A DNA stretch of 64,000 nt from Macrostomum hystrix. Taxonomy: Eukaryota > Animalia > Platyhelminthes. Location of the stretch: contig CATNEN010000014.1 in assembly GCA_950097015.1 (NCBI GenBank), positions 62,001-126,000 of the forward strand. The letters are read 5' to 3'. Of this stretch, positions 8,458 to 37,473 are shown one piece after another. Within the stretch, counting starts at the first letter, position 1; the number at the start of each line of letters is the position of its first letter. The notes under the pieces were generated by a model. It saw only the letters and a list, made by a program, of their open reading frames with translations, ran no database searches and had not been told where the DNA came from. The position numbers and the translations under genes are program-made.

Positions 8458-9340
8458 ATGGCAAGCAGCTTTTATTAGGATTCCATTGCCATTCTTGACG
8501 ACTCGACAGTTTTGAACAGCGATGACAGCCTCAGCGAGTACGAAAGCATAGATGGCGAGATGAATGAAGAAGATGCTAAGAGTGACGGGGAAAGCTTTTA
8601 AGTGAAAGAAATTTTAAATGAAAATGGATGGACTTTCGTTCAAGAGGGTGAAGAATCGCGTATTCGGGATACTCCAGTATTCCTGGGAGTTCCAGGTCCG
8701 AACCCTGACCCAAGTGCCAGATATTATGATGTCTCCGGTGGAGCTCCGCTTGCAACACTTTATAACCACTGATCTGGTGTCTGCAATTCGAGATTGGACC
8801 AATCCTCGAGCCGATTTTGAGCTGCAAAACTTTACGAGTGAGGCTGAGGGAGCTCTTCCTCCTTTTCTGTCATCTTGGAGGCCGTGCACCAACGAAGAAG
8901 TGAAGAAATGTCTATCGATCATCCTGTACATGGGTCTTCTGAAGAAGCCCGAATGCACATGTATTCGTCAAATGGTAATTTATACGGCAGCGAGTATTTT
9001 AAAAAAGAGCACTGCCTTGGAAGGGATCGGTTTATTCAGCTTATGTCCTTCCTTCGATTTTACGACTGCACCGCAGTAAATCATCGGGACTCCTTGAAGA
9101 AGATAGGGTCGTTTTTAGACCAATCGCGTGACATTTTCCAAGGCAATTACTGCCCGAATTTGAGTAGTTGGGAATGTACCAAGGAATACTCCTTTTCCGA
9201 CAGTTCATACTCAACAAGCGCGCCAAATTCGGCATAAAGGTTTACTGTCTCACAGAGGCTTCAACCGGATTTCTTTAGAACTTTTTTGTGCATGCTGTCA
9301 AGCAGCACAACGAAAGGTTTGGAGATTTTTATCCGGAATT
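8458..9340 (+). pseudogene. Decayed piggyBac transposase (DDE_Tnp_1_7 / PGBD-like)
   Basis: Acidic N-terminus, EVKKCLSIILYMGL, GRDRFIQLMSFLRF and NKRAKFGIKVYCLTEASTGF, spread over several frames with stops. Confidence 0.8.
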
Positions 9341-9399
9341 TATCTTCTAGTGAGAAGATTGCTGTTGAGCTCAGCAAGGACTTGCAGGACGTTTCCAGG

Positions 9400-9655
9400 G
9401 CTGGTCGGCGGACGACTTTCGGTCCGTGTAGGCCGCCAATGCAGACTTCTGCCGTCGGATTCTGGACGCGGCGAGGGGTGCATCCCCCAGGGAAGAGTCA
9501 AGAAGGCCAAGAGCTGGTGGGACGAGCGCTGCAGACGGGCCCATGGCGCCACTCGCGGCGTCTTAGCGGCAGCCAGAGCCGCGCCAGGTGACTTGGAAGC
9601 CGCGGCGAGATACCGCGCTGCCCGCGACCAAGCCGACCGGGTGTACCAGCAGGCA
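9400..9655 (+). mobile_element. ~255-bp fragment of the I-group (Ingi-like) LINE family
   Basis: Near-identical to 34400-34652 (GRVKKAKSWWDERCRRA...DQADRVYQQA). Confidence 0.9.
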
Positions 9656-9779
9656 GCCCCTGGAGGCCTCAAACTAAGCCCCTTTTTCCTCCCGATCTTA
9701 TCATCGCTGTTCGACCATCCATCCCGACTGCGATTTCATGCCGCACTCCAAGCTGCTGCATCTAGAGGACCGCCGGGCC

Positions 9780-10830
9780 GGCCTGGGCTATCGAGTCAGA
9801 CGCGTTTAACTGGGGAGGCTGCTGCATCACCCGAGGCCATCTACGACTGGCAGCGAAAATATCGGGTGCTCCAGTCTCTGCGCATCAGCTTTTAGCACAG
9901 CCTCGCGCCCGCGGTCACCACTCTGCACTTCCCACAACAGCGGCAACCTGGCAGCTACCCAAGGAACTTGTTAGACAGCACGGCCGCTGTTGGCGCCATG
10001 AACAAGGGTGCCTTGCTGAACCCGATTGTCAGCACAATTAAGGTAAAGAAAACTACTAAGTCCAATCTGGAGCTAATCGCCTGGCCCGCGCTAGAACGAT
10101 GCCAAAAGCCGCGCCGACGCATTCCTGCTCGCCCAACTCCGCACGGGTCACTCGGTGCGGATTGCCTATTCTCCGCTCCTACCGCAACCGACTCAGGCTC
10201 AAACCTCCACAGGCGGCAACTGAGCACTGCTCAATTGCCAGTCCTACGCCACCGCCGGGGCCGACACCTAGGCGACTACCCGACTTCGGCCATCTTTTCT
10301 ACTAATGGCCCGCGAGTACTGAGCTTCCCGCACGTGATCATTGTTGAGACCAGTGACGCCTCAGGCCGGAAGTACTATTCCACCACCACTGCAAATGCCT
10401 AAGAACGTAGCCTTTCCGGCGGCATTCCTGGTCGAATTCGGAGGCCTGCTACTCAGCGCAAACCGATTCTGCCCATCCTTAATGCTCTCACCGGAAGAGG
10501 CTATTATCTTTGAAGACCTACGGCTTGGTCTGGCAATTCTCAAGTCCGCCAGTCCAAGACAAATTAGTCCTGTGAGCGACACAAGTAGCCCTGCAACGCA
10601 TTCAGCGTGCGCGCAGCCCAGTTTTTGTATTGAGACACCACCTGCACATCAATTAGCTTGTCCCCGCTACAGCTCGCATCTCTTTGACATGCGCCATGGT
10701 TTGGCCTGGTGCCAATGACTGCCACCCGGTTTTTTTCGTTGTGGGGTTAACCTGCCTGGGAAGGTCTCTCGCTTGCACCGCACAGCCTCCGTCGCGGAGT
10801 CTCTTGAATTCGGGCGCCTTTCGCGAGCCC
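9780..10830 (+). mobile_element. Possible DIRS/Ngaro-type tyrosine-recombinase retroelement remnant
   Basis: IESDAFNWGG, DSTAAVGAMNKG and ADCL resemble DIRS-type RNase H motifs; HSLRRG at 10781-10798 resembles YR box II. Heavily decayed. Confidence 0.35.
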
Positions 10831-11525
10831 TGGTAGTAGAAAAATATTCGCTTTTCGCGAAACTATTGTTTTTGTGTTCTGCACCTCCTACTCCCTCCTT
10901 TTGGATTTCGGGCCATGGACAGTGCCCTCTCCGTGCTCGCCTTTTTCTTGGACGCGCTTGCTGTGACTGTCTTCGTGCTTAGCAGTGAGGTGTTTAGTAT
11001 GAATTAGCGCAAGAGCATGTGATAGACGAGACAGTTAAAATGCGTAAAGTGCAGCTGTAGCTTATAGCCCAGAACTGAATTTGTGCAGAGCACTATCCAA
11101 GCAAACACATTTTCCCAAAGCTCTTCGACTCTCTACATAGATTTGCAAGCCTGGGACTGTGACAGCTGCGACCTGACTTAGTCATAACATTGAATACAAA
11201 AAAACAGAATATCGACTTCAAACAAGAATAATTTTTGTTTAGTTTATATAAAAAGAACTGGGAAAGGGAAAATTACCTTTGAGATCAATATTACCTTTGT
11301 GCCTTTTAGATCTAATGTTCATTTTAAATGTCAGTTTCAAGTTCAAATATTTTTGTTTTTTATTAAAAAACTGTTAAATATTTTGCTTCATTTTATAGCA
11401 CACTTTAGCTTCTGTTACTTTTAGCGCCTATTTTATTTCAAATTATCTCGGTACTCGTTTATAACGCAGAAAAACTAATAAATTAAACTAAAATCAGTGT
11501 GCACGTAGTATAAATAATAATTATA

Positions 11526-27613: not shown

Positions 27614-30400
27614 TTGTGTCCCGCTGGTGCGACCTGTTTTAACTGTCTCTCACAGCGGCATGTAGCCGCTAAGTGTCCCTTCGTTGTCAAAAAATGCTTC
27701 AATTGCTCAAGGCTGGGCCACGCGGCTACTGCTTGCAAGTCGCTGGCTGTCACAAATCGTCGTGGCGATCAGGCCGTCAGGGAGGTCGAGCTGGAAGAGG
27801 AAAAGACGCTTTCACAGTACATATTGGCCGAACGGGAAAGGAAGATTCCGCCGATCAAGACAACAGTGCTTATAGAAGGCACGCCGGTTCGCATGGAGAT
27901 CGACACCGGCGCGTCGGTCTCACTCATTTCGTCGGACACCTTCCGCTAAGAGCTTGTGAGGGCGGCCCAAGCAACGCCCACCTGTGCACGTATTCAGAAG
28001 AGCCAGTTCCGCTGCTCGGCAGAATCATTGTCCAAGTGTGGGCGGTGGGATTGGCCAAGGAGCTTCCGCTGCTTGTCGTCAACGGCTCAGGTTCGAACCT
28101 GATCGGCTGTGACTGGCTCGTCGACCTTCCGCTGGACTGGCGCAGCATCAAGCAGGTGACCAAGGACGGTGAGCACCCGAGAATCCGCGCCCTGCTCGAC
28201 CACTACGCCGATGCTTTTTAGCCTAGACTCGGTAAGTACAATGGGCCACCTGTTCGGCTGCACTTGAAAGACGGAGCCCGGCCTCGATTTTTCAAAGCGC
28301 GCACCGTCCCCTTTGCTCTTAAAGCCAAGGTGGAGGCCCAGCTCGACAAATAAATCGAGTAGGGCGTGCTCGTGCCTGTGAACAGCTCCGACAACGCATC
28401 GCCGATCGTGCCGGTCCTTCAGTCCGACAACAACATCGAGCCTGACAAGTACCCGCTGCCACGCATTGACGAGCTTTTTGCCAAGCTGGCCGGCGGCCAA
28501 AGGTTCACCAAGCTCGGCTTGTTGTACGCCTACTCCCAGATGCCACTCGACGAAGCAGCCATCCATCAATATCTCCAAGGGACTGCTACGGTATACCCGG
28601 CTGCCGTTCGGCGTCGCTTCAGCTGCCGGCATCTTCCAGCGGTATATGGACAGCCTGCTGCAGTCCATCCCGGATGTCGCCTGTCGCTACCTAGAGCTTG
28701 TGCCACAGCGACTGCAACAGAGTGGCCTGCGCTGCGGCCTCGGCAAGTGCAACTTCATTCAGGAGAGCGTCTGCTAGCTAGGCTACAGGATAGACGCCGC
28801 AGGCTTCCGTCCGCTTCAGGACAAGGTGCGTGCGATCGAGGTCGCTCCACCACCGCAGAATGTGAGACAGCTCCGCAGCTTCCTCGGCATGGTAAACTAT
28901 TATGGCAAGTTCATGCCGAACTTGCCTGCCGATCTGGCATCGCTGCACCGCCTACTAGACCAGAGCGCCGAGTGGCGTTGGGGCGCCCTGCAAGAAGTCT
29001 ACATTCAACAAGTGCAAGAAGTTCCTCAGTAAGGTGCCGGTCCTGGCGTATTTTGACGACTACAAGCCATTGGTCCTGGAATGCGACGCCACGACGTACG
29101 GCATCGGCGCTGTCATCAGCCACCGGATGTTAACGGCATCGACCAGCCGATCGCTTTCGCTTCGCGCTCACTGCAAGACACCGAAATTCACGCTCGTCAG
29201 CGGCCACAAGCTGCTGGGAATGCTGCACGAAGACAAGCCGATTCCTTCGATGGCATCGGGCAGGATCCAGCGTTGGGCGCTCCTCCTGTCCGCCTACAGT
29301 TACACAATGGAGCACCCGTCCGGCCGATTGCTGCTCGCCGGACGCTCGTCATGGACATACTGTAATGAAGTCAGTGTGGCTTGCAGAGAGAAAATATTTT
29401 TAGAGCAGGCCTGGCCTAGCTCTCTCTATAAATACAAGTTTATTTTCCAGCCTGACCAGGCTTACCAATCAGCCGCTACCTCTGGGCGTGCACGCGCTCC
29501 AGAGTACGCACAGCGCGAGTACATTCCGGGAGAGAGAGAGAAAAATAGTACCCTCAATCCCCCACTCTGCACTGAAAGCGAAACGCAGTCACCACATGCT
29601 GGACGAAGGACCGGTCACAGCTGGAGACATTCGAGTCTGGACCCGGACTGACCCAGTCCTATCCAGAGAGCAGCAATTAACCGAATCCGTCTGCTGGCCG
29701 GAGCGGACGAGCCCTGAACTACAGGCAAGATTCGTTCCCGACGCGACCAGCTCAGCGTGCAGGACGGCTGTCTGCTCTGGGGCACTCGAGTCGTGGTGCC
29801 GCACGCCGGCCGGTCTGCGTTGCTACAGTGTCTGCACCAAGGACACCAGGGTGCGTCTAGAATGACGCACCCAGCTACGAGTGGAGTGACTGCGCGGACT
29901 GTCTAAAGCTGCAGAAGTCACCGGCACGGGTTCTGCTGCCCCCGTGGGCGTGGCCGGACAGGCCGTGGTCGCGCCTCCATATTGATTATGCACGCCCAGT
30001 CGAGGGCAAGATGCTGCTAATGGTCGTCGATGCCCACTCCAAGTGGATGGACGTGCACGTAGTGACGTCCACAACTTCGGCTGCGACGATCCAGATCCTG
30101 AGGCAGAGCTTCAGCACTTATGGGCTGCAGATGTAAGCGGCTGCGGTCCCTCGACTGCGGCGGGATCTTCCGGCGAGGGTGGCTCCCCAGCAAGCGATGC
30201 AGAAACAGCAGCACGAAGCCAACGCCTGTGATCGCCACATCGAGGTCGGCGATGCTGTGGTGGCGAGCGATTTCCCAACCGATGGCAGATGGAAGCCGGC
30301 CGTGTTGACTGCCAGCTCCGGAGCGGCGTCTTTCTCGTGTCAGTTCGACGACGGCTGACATGATCAGCGCCACATCGATCAGCTGTACAAACCGCTGCCA
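27614..30400 (+). mobile_element. Gypsy (K02A2.6-like) zinc knuckles, protease, RT, RNase H, integrase; degenerate
   Basis: CFNC..H..AKC..CFNC..GH...C, MEIDTGASVS, YPLPRIDELFAKLAGG, RLPFGVASAAGIFQR, FLGMVNYYGKF, RIQRWALLLSAY and DAHSKW. Confidence 0.88.
29361..29594 (+). mobile_element. Solo LTR (234 bp) inserted in the Gypsy pol
   Basis: TG...CA termini, internal tataaata and a 5-bp TSD catac/catgc. Removal restores VMDMLDEGPVTAGDI. Confidence 0.7.
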
Positions 30401-30830: not shown

Positions 30831-30844
30831 TGCTGTTGCTGTTG

Positions 30845-31100
30845 TTGTTGTTGTTGTGTACGGACTAGGCTCCAAACCCAGCAGCCACCCCGCGAGGCCC
30901 AGCCTCCCAGAGGAAGAAGGACCCACGAGGCCGCCGCCAGGTGGAGCCCCAACCACCGCCCCCTGGAGAGGAGCGGTGACCGAGTCCCGGTACTCTTAGC
31001 CGCCCGGTGGGAGCCGGGCGTTGCCTCCCCTCCGCGACGAAGACGCGGTGCCGGATAGGAGCCACGGCAAAGCCGTGGGCCGAGCGTAAAGCCCGACGGG
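30845..31100 (-). mobile_element. 256-bp non-autonomous retroelement with ribozyme-like 5' end and (CAA)n tail
   Basis: 14-bp TSD with 1 mismatch: tgctgttgctgttg at 30831-30844 and tgctgttactgttg at 31101-31114. (CAA)n tail on the minus strand at about 30857-30845. Confidence 0.65.
30987..31100 (-). ncRNA. HDV-like self-cleaving ribozyme candidate
   Basis: Minus-strand order: P1a cccgtcg, J1/2 hairpins, P2a ccggcacc, P3 gcg, L3 tcttcgt, cgc, P1b ggagggg, ag, gcaa, P4 cgcccgg/ccgggcg, g-C-taa, P2b gagtaccgg. P1 has only 5 of 7 pairs and P2 is imperfect. Confidence 0.6.
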
Positions 31101-33628
31101 TGCTGTTACTGTTGCCGCAGCTGACCAACGCGAGATTACTAATCTTTTGAAATGGTTGATTGTTCGTTGACTCAACTTGTAGGTATGATTACAACCCAGG
31201 GTGTCTATTATCCTAGCAGGCGTGTTCATTGTCATGCCCTAAATGATGATTCTCTTGCCGCTGCGGGTCCTTCGGATCCTCCAGGTGGCGCACTCTAACG
31301 TCTGCTTAAAGTAGCCAATTAAACATTTTAACAATTGGCGGGAATGAATAATAAATTGACGAAATTCCAACATGAGTTAAAACGGCCCTAGATCCACATT
31401 CAAGGACAACGTCACTGCGTAAAATTTCAAAATCATTTTGCTACTTTTTTAACACTATGTCAGCGGAGATACCAGCAAAGCTGCTGAGGCAACGGGGGGT
31501 AACCAAAAATAGGCGCGGGAGGCTAGTGGTTAAAGCCTTGGTCTGGTCATTTATCTTGCTTAGACACAAGCGCCAAAACCAAGCAATGTTGAATACTCGA
31601 ATGTTGAAGGCAAAAAATATGCATTATTTATTTATTTTTTTATTTTCAAGTCATTCTTGATTATTTTGAAAACTCTAAATCGCATTCGCTTCAAAGAAGG
31701 AAAAGCAATTTGTTTTAAAAACGAACTTTAACTTTTGAAGCATGTACGTTAAAACCGACTTGGACCTAAATATCCTCTTTCTGGCATCGCAAAACTGGTA
31801 TTACAATACAAGCACGTCAGAATGTGCTTTTTGTATACGAGCGTATTCTCGGATGTCAAAAAACTGAACTTCACTTAACGGCCGGATTAACTAGCTCCGC
31901 ATGAAATCGCAGACTTGATCGATTGTTACAGCAATTTGAGATTAACGAGCTCGTATACGATTTGAAGCATATATCATTGGTAGTAGCAGCTATTTGACAT
32001 CAATTGACTATGACCAGACAGACCAGATTACTTATTAGCTGACTTAGTGCGTCGCTGGCGATCCAGACAGTTTCTGAAAGGAAATTTAATTCCAATGATT
32101 ATATTAAACTCGTTCTAGCATATTATAAGCTCGAATAAACCTTCGCTTCACTCGCTTCCACGTGGCTTCTGCTGGGTTCAAAAAGAATCCATGGGGATTT
32201 AATTAGGCTTAAGAGCGTCCTTTCTGACTCGCACATGCTAAATTGTTAACTTACTTCTCCCAAAGCTCCTTTGGCCAGTTGACAAAGTAGGAGAATTCGA
32301 AGGCAGGCGAAATGCTCTGACTGAACCGCAGCTCCATAACCTCTCGACGTACATGTAGTAGCTCTGTGTGTTCATGCCTACCCATGTTTGACCGCTCAGT
32401 TCGAGACCGTCGCGCGCGCTGGGAATTCGCAGTACTTTGGCAGCCATTGGTAGACCTCCTCCCACCGTCTTCCCATCTGCCAGTTATTTCAGCTGTATCG
32501 TTGACAGAAAGGCCATCGGTCTGCAAAGCTAGACTGCTGTGATATGTTTTCGCATTCGAATTCGTTAAGCATGGCCCAGTCGTACTCTCAAAACGTTTCG
32601 AACCAAGTGGCTTGATATTATAGTGAGATAGCTGCTCAGATTTATCAAGCTCATTATGGGCCTCACTCTCTGCATCTTGAGCAGAAGCTTGAACACTTAA
32701 AGTTGAGGAACCCTCGAGCTCGGCCCTGTGTCTCCTGCGGCTCTAAAATTATTGGATAAGAGACTTGCTACATCTCCACCTATATATCGAAATACACCAA
32801 AAAGTTGAAATAAAGATAGATATAAATCGTAGCTTATTGAGAACTTTTGATTTCTACGCGCTCTTACTTGAAGCATACTAGAATCTTTTAGATGTATTCT
32901 ACTTGTATATTAGCTTGTATATTAGTAGACGATGAGCAAATTCGGGTAAATTTGCTTTTCACTCTTCACTGTCTGTTTCTCATCTCACCTCGATCTAATT
33001 CTATCTGGTTCTCTACCTCTGCCCTCGTTCTCACACCTTTATGTCGTCTTGTGATTCGTCCGCCTCTCACATTTTCGCCTCTTTCTTACCCCCAGTCGCG
33101 TACTCTGCTGTTATTGCAACGCCAACCTCCCTCCAGTCAGTCCAGTGCTGAAATACAAATATATACTCCAGGGCCCTACATAAATACATCCTACGCTCTT
33201 TACAGTTTCTCTGTAACTTAATCTCGACTACCTGCAGGCCAGCCAAAAATAAATTCCTTGTTTTTTTCTCGACAGGCTTAGCTAAATGTTTGAATAAAGA
33301 GGGTCAATCACAAACGTTGATTAGGAGGTGTACAATCTACTGCCACACTCACGACTGAGGTTAGAGAGATAAGTTTTCTTCCTTCGCTACAGGCACTTTT
33401 TTACTGTTGCTGAGTATATAAACTTAGGTTAAGGCCTATATCCCCTGGGAACAGCGCAGGCGCCGGACTACAGCACAATTAGCTCAGCCATCACCACTGC
33501 CGCTGCCAAGACTCTGCCGCTTATGGAACCTGCGTCACGGCAACTTCCAGTTTGGGCGAGCGACCCGGAGGTCCGTGAGGCCCGCCGCACTGTCAAGCAG
33601 CTGGGGCGAGCCAGGCGACCGACATCCG

Positions 33629-36600
33629 CAGTGGAACCTCAACGGGCTACAGGCGCGTCGACCGGCACTTGAACGGCTGCTGGAGGAAAACAAAATAGAC
33701 ATCGCCCTTCTGCAGGAATCTAACCTCACCGAGAGAGAGCCCACACCCAAGCTCCGCGGTTACACCGTCCACCGCCGCGACCGGGTCGTCCACCGGGGGG
33801 GTGGCGGTCACCATGGAGGCCTGCTCACTCTGGTCAAACAAGGCCTGGCCCATGAAGAGGTGGAGGCGGGTCTGCGGACCCCCGTCAACGCGGCCCTGGA
33901 GCAGCTGACCATCCGTCTGTTCGGAGACAAGTCCAAGCCGCTGCACCTCACCAACCTCTACCGCCCACCTGTACGGCACTCCGACGCGGACGACCGAGAC
34001 GGGGCCCTACACACCAACGGCTGGCCCACCGATGGGCACTGGCTGCTGATGGGCGACCTCAACGCTCACGGTAGCTGGGACCCGAATGCTGATCCGGACC
34101 CCCCTGGAAGCGAGCTCGACGATTGGCTGAGCGACCACGGCTGGATGGCGCTCAACGACGGCAGTGCCACTAGAGTGAGCCCGGGGGGGGGTGAGTCGGC
34201 GCCCGACGTGTCGCTCTGCAGTGCTGTCTGGTCCAGCCGGATCAGCTGGCGCGTGGGGGACGCCATGGGGTCGGACCACCTCCCTCTGCTGCTGACCATC
34301 GCCTTCACCCAAACCCATGAGCGACGCCGCCCAGCTGGCTTCAACCTGCGACGGGCGGACTGGCCGACCTACGCGACGCGGGCGGGTGATTTTTTCCTGG
34401 GCTGGTCGGCGGACGGCTTTCGGTCCGTGGAGGCCGCCAATGCAGACTTCTGCCGCAGGATCCTGGACGCGGCGAGCTGCATCCCCAAGGGCAGAGTTAA
34501 GAAGGCCAAGAGCTGGTGGGACGAGCGATGCAGACGGGCCCAGGGCGCCACTCGCGGCGCCTTAGCGGCAGCCAGAGCCGCGCCAGGGGACTTGGAAGCC
34601 GCGGCGAGGTACCGCGCTGCCCGCGACCAAGCCGACCGAGTGTACCAACAGGCGAAGACCGAGTCCTGGCAAGGTTTCGTCGCGGAGCTGTCGGCCAGGT
34701 CCCCAGACAACAAGGTCTGGAACACCATCAGGGCCCTCGATGGCCGAGCGCATGAGCCGCTCCCTGACACCCCGCTCCGCAAGGGCAACAAGACCGCGAC
34801 CTCTGACCGGGAGAAGGCAGACATGGCGATGGCGACCTATGCGGAGGCAAGCCGACTCCGCGTTCCGAAGACAGATCAGCAGGCTGCCAGGAGGGAGGTC
34901 CGCCGCGCTCTGCAGAACGAGACGGACGACCTGCGGTCCACCCCGTTCCACCTGGCAGAGCTGGACGTCGTTCTGAGGGAGGTCGAGGGGAAGGCGCCGG
35001 GTCAAGACGGAGTTCTCCCGGCTTTTCTTCAAAACCTCCCGTCGATCGGACGGGTCGCCCTGCTCTCCCTGCTCAACCGGAGCTGGTTGGAGGGCAAGGT
35101 TCCATCGGGCTGGCGCACGGCCATCATCACGCCCATTGCCAAGAAGGGCAAGCCCAAGAGCGACCCGGCATCCTTCCGACCTGTCTCGCTGCTCAGCTGT
35201 GTCGGGAAGACGTTAGAAGCGATGGTGCAGCGCAGGCTGGCGGCCTGGGCGGAGGAGATCGGCCTGCTCCCGGACGCGCAGTCCGGGTTTCGCGCCAGCC
35301 GCAGCACGGTTGACGCCCTAGCGCAGCTGGCCCAGCCGGCCTTTGACGACCTGCAGACGCGGCCGATGACGAGGACCCTGGTGGCAGCGATCGACTTCTT
35401 CGCTGCTTTTGACCGAACCTGGCGCCTCGGGGTGCTGCGGCAACTGGCTCGAGCGAGCGCCCCGGGACGGTGGCTGCGCTGGATCCGCGCGTTTCTGGCT
35501 GACCGGAGAGCTCGAGTGCGCTGGGTTGATAGCATGAGCCGGCCCAAGATCCTGAAGGAGGGAGTCCCGCAAGGCAGTCCGTTGTCCCCGCTGCTATTCA
35601 ACATTGCGACCTGTACCCTGCCAGACGCCATCCAGTCCGCCGCCCCGCTCTGTAAGCCGCTGCAATACGCCGATGACCTGTCCATCAAGACGTCGGCGGG
35701 CACTGCGGCGGCAGCGGCGGAGAACATGCAACAAGCGCTGGAAGCGGCAGAAACCTGGTGCCAGCAGCATCACTTCGAACTGGCCCCAAACAAGACCGAG
35801 GCCCTGCTGGTGAGTACCCATCCCGTGGAGAATACCGAGGCCTTCCGCAACTCTGTTCAGCTCCAGGTCGGTGGGCAGACGATCAGCTGCCGGAAGGAGG
35901 CGCGCATCCTGGGGGTGTTCGTGGACTCCCAGGTCACCTTCGCCGAGCAGGCCCGTCGCGCGCTGGCTGCCATGCGGAGCCGGCTCAACGCCCTGCGGGC
36001 TGTGGCTTCCCGCCGGTGGGGAGCTGACGCTGATACGCTTCGTCGGCTCTACTGCGGCTACGTTCGCCCGGCGGGGCTGTACGCGGCGGAGGTGTGGTGG
36101 CCTTTTCTGGCTCGTACCCACCGGGAGCGGTTGGAGTCGATGAATTACGCCGCGGCCCGGGCCATCACCGGTGTCAGTCCCGGTGCCCGGGCTGCTGCGC
36201 TGATCGCGGACGCCGGGCTACAGCCCCTGGACATCATTTGCCGGATTCGGGCGGCTGAGCTCTACCTGCGATGCCGCCAGTTCAGCGAGGGCCACCCGCT
36301 GCGGAAGCTAACCGACGCCCCGCCGAACACGACGAGACTGCGGTCGAGAGGGGGCGGGACCCGCGGGTGCTGGAGAGAGACGGCGCTTGCGGCCCTGGAG
36401 GAGGCGGGATGTCACGCTCGGAACATTGAGGGGTGCGTTCCGCTCTCCTGCCTGCACCGGCCGTGGACCCCTCATCACTCGGCCCGCTTCGCTGCGGCGG
36501 ATGCTGGGCGCGAGGAGCCCCCGGAGGTCCGACGCGCGAGGGCCTTAGAACTGCTGGACTCCCTTCGCCGGAGCGACCCGCCGTACCTCGAAGTCTGGAC

Positions 36601-37447
36601 AGACGGGGCGGCGGAAGAAGGCTTCAGAAATGGCGGTGGAGGCTACATCATCCGGCGTAATGCTATCGGCCCCGACGTCAAGGGCAGTATCCCGACCGGA
36701 CGGTGGACCAGTTCGACCACTTCAGAAGCGGCCGCGGCGGCGGCGGGGCTCGAGGCAGCCCTCGGTCTCCTTCGGGGGAAGCCGAGCTCGGCGATCTGGC
36801 TGCTGTTCGACTCACGAGCCCTGTTCCAGCGGCTGCAGTCCTCGACCAAGTGCCTGCAAGACCACGCCACCGCGCAAGCCGCGATCCTGCTCCAACAGCT
36901 GGCCAGCGAGCACAGGCCAACGGTCATCTGGATCCCAGGGCATGCAGGCCTTGCGCTTAACGAGGCCGCCGATGAGCTGGCCCGGAGAGGGTCCGCCATG
37001 CAGCAAGACCCCCAGCCTGTCCCCGTGTCGGCCGCCAGGGCCGCCCTCCGTCGCCAGGGACGAACGGCCGAATTGGCTGAGTATAATCAGCTAGTTCCGG
37101 CGGACCACCCCCACAGGCTCTGCGGCGGAGCGCAGTTCATCCACCGGCCAGGCTGGCCGCGGACGGCCGAGGTGGCGCTGTACCAGCTTCGGGCCAACCG
37201 GGCGCCCTTCCTGCAGGCCACCCGGCATCGTTGGGGCCGCGACCCAACCGCTGCCTGCCCGCACTGCAATGCCCCCGAAGAAGACACCCGGCATTTCCTG
37301 TTAGACTGCCCCAGGTGGGCGGAGGAGCGCCGGCTTCACATCCCAGAGGCTATCAACGGCTCTATGTCCCCACTGCAGAACGACCCAGAAGGGGTGCGGG
37401 CCTTCGTCGAGGCGTCGGGCGCGCTGGCGCGCCCCCCGTATGCCTAG
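33629..37447 (+). CDS. Uninterrupted APE-RT-RNase H-CCHC polyprotein (~1272 aa, native start missing)
   Basis: QWNLNG, LLQES, GDLNAH and GSDH; FRPVSLLSCVGK, GVPQGSPLSP and YADD; WTDGA and WIPGHAGLALNEAADELAR; CPHC...HFLLDCP. No stop from 33629 to 37447. Confidence 0.92.
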   Translation, partial: QWNLNGLQARRPALERLLEENKIDIALLQESNLTEREPTPKLRGYTVHRRDRVVHRGGGGHHGGLLTLVKQGLAHEEVEAGLRTPVNAALEQLTIRLFGDKSKPLHLTNLYRPPVRHSDADDRDGALHTNGWPTDGHWLLMGDLNAHGSWDPNADPDPPGSELDDWLSDHGWMALNDGSATRVSPGGGESAPDVSLCSAVWSSRISWRVGDAMGSDHLPLLLTIAFTQTHERRRPAGFNLRRADWPTYATRAGDFFLGWSADGFRSVEAANADFCRRILDAASCIPKGRVKKAKSWWDERCRRAQGATRGALAAARAAPGDLEAAARYRAARDQADRVYQQAKTESWQGFVAELSARSPDNKVWNTIRALDGRAHEPLPDTPLRKGNKTATSDREKADMAMATYAEASRLRVPKTDQQAARREVRRALQNETDDLRSTPFHLAELDVVLREVEGKAPGQDGVLPAFLQNLPSIGRVALLSLLNRSWLEGKVPSGWRTAIITPIAKKGKPKSDPASFRPVSLLSCVGKTLEAMVQRRLAAWAEEIGLLPDAQSGFRASRSTVDALAQLAQPAFDDLQTRPMTRTLVAAIDFFAAFDRTWRLGVLRQLARASAPGRWLRWIRAFLADRRARVRWVDSMSRPKILKEGVPQGSPLSPLLFNIATCTLPDAIQSAAPLCKPLQYADDLSIKTSAGTAAAAAENMQQALEAAETWCQQHHFELAPNKTEALLVSTHPVENTEAFRNSVQLQVGGQTISCRKEARILGVFVDSQVTFAEQARRALAAMRSRLNALRAVASRRWGADADTLRRLYCGYVRPAGLYAAEVWWPFLARTHRERLESMNYAAARAITGVSPGARAAALIADAGLQPLDIICRIRAAELYLRCRQFSEGHPLRKLTDAPPNTTRLRSRGGGTRGCWRETALAALEEAGCHARNIEGCVPLSCLHRPWTPHHSARFAAADAGREEPPEVRRARALELLDSLRRSDPPYLEVWTDGAAEEGFRNGGGGYIIRRNAIGPDVKGSIPTGRWTSSTTSEAAAAAAGLEAALGLLRGKPSSAIWLLFDSRALFQRLQSSTKCLQDHATAQAAILLQQLASEHRPTVIWIPGHAGLALNEAADELARRGSAMQQDPQPVPVSAARAALRRQGRTAELAEYNQLVPADHPHRLCGGAQFIHRPGWPRTAEVALYQLRANRAPFLQATRHRWGRDPTAACPHCNAPEEDTRHFLLDCPRWAEERRLHIPEAINGSMSPLQNDPEGVRAFVEASGALARPPYA

Positions 37448-37473
37448 CGAGGGATCTGAACCAACACACACAC
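33629..37473 (+). mobile_element. I-group (Ingi/Nimb-like) LINE, 5'-truncated, young
   Basis: 11-bp TSD accgacatccg at 33618-33628 and 37474-37484; (AC)n tail at about 37463-37473. Confidence 0.9.

Follow-up and report, generated by a model that had tools for sequence, protein, structure and literature searches.

A (CAG/CAA)n-targeted retroposon of Macrostomum hystrix with an HDV-like ribozyme head and a putatively split P1 helix

Analysis of the window (the whole stretch of 64,000 nucleotides of Macrostomum hystrix DNA that was analysed) suggests that its minus strand carries, from position 31100 to 30845, a non-autonomous non-LTR retroposon which has an HDV-type ribozyme as its head and is mobilised by the machinery of a CAG-targeting LINE. 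We give this reading a probability of about 0.7. The element is 256 bp in length, starts with CCCGUCGGGC and ends in (CAA)4 (30845–30856, minus strand, as are all coordinates of the element given below). As expected of a retroposon of this class, it is short and non-coding, is flanked by target site duplications (TSDs), has a repeat as its 3′ tail and occurs in dispersed copies, some of them 5′-truncated. Its composition is best explained as a LINE-derived head of ~128 nt joined to a body of ~115 nt of other or untraced origin, followed by the (CAA)n tail.

The TSD is 14 bp long. Its 5′ copy (31114–31101) is part of a CAA/CAG-type repeat and is identical at 13 of 14 positions to the 3′ copy (30844–30831), directly beyond which the unique flank begins again. 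The element's 5′ end, as set by the TSD, coincides with the first nucleotide of the HDV-like fold. An earlier note on this DNA had described a short mobile retroelement with such a TSD, a (CAA)n tail, a ribozyme fold at the exact 5′ boundary and no Pol III boxes. The TSD, the tail and the register of the fold are all as described on the minus strand; the mobile nature is borne out by multiple copies with TSDs, varied flanks and truncations; and ARAGORN finds no tRNA-like head in the element, while matches to a B-box pattern occur at chance level only. With the ribozyme of a LINE as its head, the element is not a classical Pol III-driven SINE.

The HDV-like core is located in the first 116 nt of the element and consists of P3, L3, P1.1, P4, J4/2 with C30999, and P2. 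In the alignment to the Rfam HDV-type ribozyme family RF02682, P3 (GCG/CGC) and its 7-nt loop L3 occupy nt 55–67 (31034–31046), and L3 reads UCUUCGU with the conserved U and G. The next segment (31025–31033) holds the P1 3′ strand GGAGGGG (nt 68–74) and the P1.1 3′ strand AG (nt 75–76), which pairs with CU. It is followed by J1.1/4 (GCAA) and the 7-bp P4 (31001–31024, P4 being nt 81–100) and by J4/2 (30994–31000), where the candidate catalytic C lies at 30999 (C102) within GGCUAAG. P2 is formed by a 5′ strand at 31048–31055 (nt 46–53) and a 3′ strand at 30986–30993. Thus P1, P1.1, P2, P3 and P4 of the double pseudoknot are present in canonical order, all of them covary, and the 5′ strand of P1 is in two pieces. 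The individual elements of the core named in the earlier note, namely the P3, the L3, the GCAAC and GGCUAAG strings, the 7-bp P4, the compensated P1.1 and the candidate catalytic C, are accordingly all found on the minus strand.

On sequence criteria the HDV-like core exceeds chance. In an E-value scan of an 801-bp segment against 4227 Rfam families, RF02682 was the top match (30988–31059, 33.9 bits, E=2e-4), so that the proposed search with an HDV-like descriptor gives a match, though a sub-threshold one, since the gathering score of this family is 44. The Rfam scan of the whole window at the gathering threshold is blank because 33.9 bits falls below that score. A similar E-value scan of five LINE heads detected no HDV model at E<=1 and returned low-complexity artefacts only.

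P1 pairs perfectly in the window copy because it is made of nt 1–3 together with nt 40–43. The first part (P1a, CCC, 31098–31100) pairs with 31027–31029 and the second (P1b, CUCC, 31058–31061) with 31030–31033, the two together being the exact complement of the P1 3′ strand (7/7 pairs). Between base pairs 3 and 4, the gap of 36 nt is occupied without any unpaired nucleotide by two adjoining hairpins of 7 bp each, hairpin A (nt 4–22, 31079–31097) and hairpin B (nt 23–39, 31062–31078), both of which also appear in the MFE fold. In the proposed fold the split P1 thus forms a perfect four-way junction, with predicted cleavage directly 5′ of 31100. Instead of a continuous P1 of 6–7 bp, the element therefore has 3 + 4 bp with 36 nt in between, whereas P1 of the sister LINE L059 is continuous. 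The first P1 pair is C-G in the short element in place of the usual G-U wobble.

P2 pairs at 8/8 positions in the sister copy L002 and at 7/8 in the window copy, where a C-A mismatch results from a private G-to-A change at 30991; the other young copies have G here. Of the two helices whose imperfection led the earlier note to suggest that the window copy may be inactive, P2 is indeed imperfect, the single C-A mismatch being the sole visible defect of this ribozyme, and P1 is intact in the split register.

Heads homologous to that of the short element are present in LINEs of the same genome. L010 (contig C1) matches nt 1–76 of the element (80% identity over 91 nt); the 3′ half of its ribozyme, which differs in sequence, then leads to ACC-ATG and on to a leader, a 2A peptide and a PHD finger. 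A block of 12 nt directly after the ribozyme (30974–30985) is common, by direct reading, to the heads of L010 and L059, and in L010 the ATG follows this block immediately. Relative to the short element, L010 has a compensated change in P2 (nt 47, C-G to A-U), an entirely different P4 which is nevertheless perfectly paired over 7 bp, and compensated changes in both 5′ hairpins; its J4/2 has C at the position of 30999. L049, L051 and L058 are decayed heads of the L010 type, with U in place of the catalytic C in L051 and L058. Use of the PHD-endonuclease portion of the L010-type LINE as protein query revealed the more distant L075 and L077 (L079 has the sequence of L077), whose LINE open frames of 1562–1643 aa are ~28% identical to the query protein. 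Their heads each begin directly after (CAG)n and read CCG, hairpin A, hairpin B, GGUC.

In L075 and L077, CCG plus GGUC are perfectly complementary to GACCCGG. Compared with the short element, four of the seven P1 pairs have both partners replaced, and all still pair; the compensated ones include three of the four pairs of P1b, and the third pair of P1a is G-C. The sequences of the hairpins, P2 and P4 also differ from those of the short element and are all perfectly paired, so that P4 is wholly different yet paired in L010, L075 and L077 alike. J4/2 has C followed by AA in L059, L075 and L077 as well. With filters off, the covariance model places the L075 and L077 heads in the same register (E=0.008–0.03). 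In L059 and L076 the P1 of this ribozyme is uninterrupted, CCCGGUC with GACCGGG, and is in effect the split form minus the hairpins.

Every helix of the fold covaries. Across the family, both sides are altered in six of the seven pairs of hairpin A and in all seven of hairpin B, and P1.1 changes from CU with AG in the window copy to UU with AA in L051. In an alignment of 11 heads, 86.9% of the cells of the full model are paired as against 38–47% when the partners are slid, 16 pairs are altered on both sides, and none of 500 shuffles attains the observed values; P2 and P1.1 were absent from the covariance model that made this alignment. In a set of nine heads which includes two distant LINEs, 97% of the cells are paired as against 40–56% in slid controls, with compensation in 19 of 26 pairs. 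For the nested helices such alignments are fitted to the model, and the direct reading of the L075 and L077 heads is the cleaner evidence. The covariation in P1, P1.1 and P2 for which the earlier note had proposed to look is hence present in all three.

It could be argued that the head is a relic of the parent LINE and that the RNA's 5′ end is set by an internal promoter, as by Pr77 of L1Tc, and not by cleavage. A single stretch of 77 nt serves L1Tc and NARTc both as promoter and as ribozyme (PMC3383444), and both the P2 mismatch of the window copy and the U in place of the catalytic C in the old LINE heads L051 and L058 are in line with such a possibility. However, all helices of the double pseudoknot, including P2 and P1.1, have been kept by compensated changes across lineages, which points to selection on the RNA fold. 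Moreover, promoter and ribozyme roles can coexist, so that this explanation does not fully exclude cleavage. We regard a promoter acting in place of the ribozyme as unlikely, although it is the strongest competitor of the self-cleaving head.

An ordinary, uninterrupted P1 is a much less probable alternative to the split form. Such a helix would use either nt 42–48, as in the Rfam alignment, where six of seven positions pair and the cut would fall 41 nt inside the element, or nt 1–7, where five of seven pair; the split register gives 7/7. However, nt 46–48 belong to P2, and L010 alters nt 47 and its partner together from C-G to A-U. The first 41 nt, which a cut at nt 42 would remove, are kept in all full-length copies. 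As for nt 1–7, hairpin A uses nt 4–7 and covaries, and in L075 and L077, where this register was compared with the split one, nt 1–7 are not complementary to GACCCGG while the split form pairs at 7/7. The best fit to the sequences would therefore be a split P1, with the hairpins inside its 5′ strand rather than in J1/2. The earlier placement of P1a at nt 1–7 with two hairpins in J1/2 was right in its count of five pairs out of seven but is superseded as a helix assignment.

We found no description of an interrupted P1 in the papers on HDV-like ribozymes that were consulted, nor did our literature search find any paper on HDV-like ribozymes in flatworms. Because an interrupted P1 is undescribed there, activity cannot be assumed. 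That the ribozyme is active and the two-hairpin insertion in P1 contributes to its function is a tentative proposal, for which we put the chances a little short of even. If true, the retention of the insertion by a non-autonomous element would suggest that the head is needed in cis for something beyond cutting, possibly to bind the LINE protein or, through its fold, to time cleavage.

The genome searched comprises 220 Mb in 42 contigs. It contains at least 11 matches to the element, and a pattern search adds two short copies, giving about a dozen; the sequence is thus not single-copy. These counts are lower bounds, the best 150 of ~9,000–11,000 candidates having been scored in the pre-filtered genome search, and the covariance models R1 and R2 each recover at least 12 heads among those best 150. 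Two subfamilies of different age can be recognised by identity (94–100% and 71–82%). The young one includes the window copy (L001), L002 (99%), L003 and L004 (94%) and L005. L003 and L004, local duplicates of each other at a distance of 11 kb, have a 12-nt duplication in P4; L005 is 5′-truncated, with nt 99 as its first position and a CAG TSD of its own. L006–L011 are old and decayed. The pattern search added L027, an old copy, and L031, an extreme 5′ truncation of which only the last ~20 nt and the tail are left.

The flanks vary between copies, and a CAA/CAG repeat precedes every insertion. The 3′ flanks of L002, L005 and the LINE 3′ end L060 are 90% identical over more than 500 bp and belong to a repeated unit (unit X), of which at least 36 copies exist, almost all of them on contig C1. 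The start of unit X is exon-like, an ATG followed by (CAG)n, and its intact copies L063–L073 represent paralogous empty sites for L002 and L005. The TSDs, the empty sites and the flanks therefore demonstrate directly that the element is mobile and that it prefers (CAG/CAA)n. The view that it is no mobile unit of its own, and is instead a LINE 5′ fragment joined by deletion or rearrangement and then spread by segmental duplication, can draw on the L003/L004 pair and on a body without LINE homologue, but is hardly tenable in the face of independent insertions that differ in their flanks and have a TSD and a (CAA)n tail each, 5′-truncated and extreme 5′-truncated copies, empty paralogous sites and two subfamilies of different age.

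In contrast to the head, the body of the retroposon (nt 128–244, 30857–30973) has no match in any LINE sampled. Its consensus fold, from eight copies, has a conserved 11-bp stem-loop and a larger, long-range domain with a few compensated pairs. A DNA search of the genome with 128 nt of the 3′ half returned copies of the short element only and no LINE sharing it, and a genome pattern search with the conserved 3′ end plus tail returned short-element copies and one unrelated site only. Shuffle-controlled local alignments of the body with six LINE 3′ ends and four LINE leaders stayed within noise, whereas several of the LINE 3′ ends do match one another in the same alignments. A LINE homologous at both ends, which the earlier note had proposed to look for, was thus found for the 5′ end only. 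The peptide SFFLWEAG, taken there as a possible LINE C-terminal remnant, is indeed present in one open frame, but it has no homologue among the six LINE 3′ ends sampled, and tblastn of this frame against ten LINE loci and the LINE region of the window gave nothing outside the head. An open frame of this kind is unremarkable because the sequence is so G+C-rich. Of a SINE-like parasite of a LINE, what stands is a short, non-coding, mobile element with a LINE-derived head; a LINE-derived 3′ end is unsupported, though a parent LINE with this 3′ end may lie outside the sample or have been lost. As no LINE shares the 3′ body, the case for a partnership is therefore made from the head, the tail and the target only.

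The tail and the target are the same in the short element and in the LINEs with related heads. In L059, L060, L062, L081 and L082 the stop codon is followed after 7–30 nt by a (CAA)n tail, which passes into a CAG repeat; L081 is the 3′ end of an L075-type LINE and L082 that of an L077-type LINE. These LINEs thus have the (CAA)n end and the (CAG/CAA)n target of the short element, which has the 12-nt block in common with L010 and L059 and therefore most likely uses their machinery, as far as can be judged from the sequences. L059 and L076 represent an intact LINE with an open frame of 1429 aa containing PHD, APE, RT and RNase H domains. The order of domains in the partner LINEs (2A, PHD, APE, RT, RNase H in one long open frame) appears compatible with the Ingi/L1Tc group. 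Other candidate partners were rejected. L055, a LINE 9 kb upstream of the window, and the LINE inside the window at 33575–37447 do not have a (CAA)n tail, their tails being a TAAGTCAAG-type repeat and (CA)n; L012 is a head fragment broken by an unrelated LINE of the 33575–37447 type. For the closest LINE, neither L056 nor L057 provided a 3′ end that was intact.

The following life cycle is proposed for the ribozyme-headed retroposon. It would be contained in a longer transcript, either of the host or from read-through, and the first 116 nt of the element would fold into an HDV-type double pseudoknot, with nt 1–3 and nt 40–43 pairing to one continuous 3′ strand as P1. Self-cleavage 5′ of nt 1 would then release an RNA starting at the first base of the element. 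This RNA would be copied into (CAG/CAA)n by the endonuclease and reverse transcriptase of the 2A/PHD/APE/RT/RNase H LINE clade, with the (CAA)n tail probably priming on the nicked repeat. We infer read-through transcription, cleavage and trans-mobilisation by these LINEs from the structure of the element and, by analogy, from known systems: the mechanism of R2 SIDEs and NARTc (PMC3414825, PMC4035085) would be the best reading for the present element.

The R2 SIDEs and R2/R1 hybrid SIDEs of Drosophila are short non-coding elements with the HDV-like ribozyme of a LINE at their 5′ end (Eickbush and Eickbush 2012, PMC3414825). R2 SIDEs propagate by target-primed reverse transcription from a site-specific LINE (PMC3414825), as may also be the case here, and in the hybrid SIDEs the ribozyme head is joined to a 3′ end of other origin (PMC3414825), which is seemingly so in the flatworm element too. 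The 5′ end of the latter is homologous to LINE heads, as in a SIDE, and its 3′ body matches none of the six LINE 3′ ends. Unlike the Drosophila SIDEs, it resides in a flatworm and is targeted to a (CAG/CAA)n microsatellite instead of rDNA, and unlike R2 SIDEs it has a 3′ part without a match in any sampled LINE and a P1 broken by two hairpins.

In trypanosomatids, the non-autonomous NARTc, RIME and SIDER elements of the L1Tc/ingi clade share the ribozyme head of a LINE (PMC4035085, PMC3185411), and ribozyme cleavage has been mapped to C at +1 (PMC4035085). L1Tc encodes APE, RT and RNase H (PMC4035085), as do the partner LINEs described here. We detected no sequence relationship between the flatworm element and the trypanosomatid ones, and P1 of the trypanosomatid ribozymes is continuous whereas that of our element is split. 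L1Tc also has a single ORF with an N-terminal 2A. The 3′ end of the trypanosomatid elements is poly(A), and they are not known to be specific for microsatellites.

Helices outside an HDV-type core are a feature that the element has in common with the large HDV-like ribozymes. The ribozyme drz-Agam-2 has a structured peripheral domain, P1.2, in J1/2 (PMC4908430), J1/2 loops of R2 ribozymes reach about 700 nt (PMC3774820), and peripheral helices have been reported to stimulate folding and cleavage in such ribozymes (PMC4908430, PMC3774820). However, in these ribozymes the insertion is located in J1/2, past the last nucleotide of the P1 5′ strand (PMC3774820, PMC4908430), while in the element it is inside P1. 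Dong, a (TAA)n-specific LINE, also has a 5′ HDV-like ribozyme (PMC3774820), so that a microsatellite target is combined in both elements with an RNA 5′ end cut by an HDV-like ribozyme (as predicted for ours). Dong differs in its repeat target and its clade, and in being autonomous rather than a short derivative.

Short, ribozyme-headed LINE derivatives have been described in flies and trypanosomes, and the element extends them to a flatworm and to a CAG-targeting LINE clade. The type of element is a known one, here represented by a new member whose host and target are also new; the split architecture of the ribozyme is new as far as the literature was searched. The new contributions are the non-autonomous derivative, the covariation of P1 between lineages, the pair of canonical and split ribozymes and the CAG target with its empty sites. 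The element can alter coding sequence, since the CAG repeats in which it inserts include polyglutamine-coding ones in a gene-like unit of multiple copies. The genome also offers a matched set, consisting of a canonical ribozyme (L059), LINEs with the hairpin-inserted form (L075 and L077) and a stripped-down parasite with the inserted form. The head of L010 is likewise of the hairpin-inserted type, although this LINE copy is broken, being interrupted by an unrelated LINE.

The unit X, into which the CAG-targeting ribozyme-headed LINEs and the short element have repeatedly inserted, is a multi-copy sequence (at least 36 copies, 86–94% identity), with nearly every copy on contig C1 of genome G000; L002:1391-1984 and the intact loci L063-L073 are examples. 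The start of the unit is exon-like and is located 3' of a splice-acceptor-like TTTTCAG; it comprises, in order, an ATG, a (CAG)n stretch for polyglutamine and a conserved stretch of about 60 codons. In L002, the 197-codon frame runs uninterrupted across the short-element insertion.

P4 of the ribozyme contains a 12-nt duplication in L003:1640-1768 and at the same positions of L004, which are a locally duplicated pair of short-element copies, 11 kb apart. The heads at L059:190-275 and L076:203-290, belonging to two copies of one intact LINE, show an HDV-like fold of textbook shape with a continuous P1; their P1.1 has one good pair only, and their longer J4/2 reads GCCUACCAA.

The region L054:168-890 is an internally deleted derivative, about 720 bp in length, of a LINE of the L058 type (a decayed split-P1 head). 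Its own head is a decayed split-P1 form with U at the catalytic position, and a TAC/CAA microsatellite is present at its end. It may represent a second, independent short derivative.

Transposons are abundant around the short element in the window. An open frame with LTR-retrotransposon RNase H domain fragments is located at 29034-29651 (+). A LINE whose open frame of 1290 aa contains APE, RT, RNase H and zf-RVT domains occupies 33575-37447 (+); its 3' end, near 37465, is a (CA)n tail. No head matching R1, a covariance model of ribozyme heads, is present at this LINE, which is unrelated to the short element.

A second LINE family, an unrelated one (APE, RT, RNase H; L012:501-7240 and L055:2875-8905), has a TAAGTCAAG-type repeat as its tail. 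One copy of this family breaks the L010 head fragment, from a LINE head 80% identical over 91 nt to that of the short element. Another copy, located 9 kb upstream of the window with a TSD of 10-11 bp, begins at the same internal point as the head-interrupting copy.
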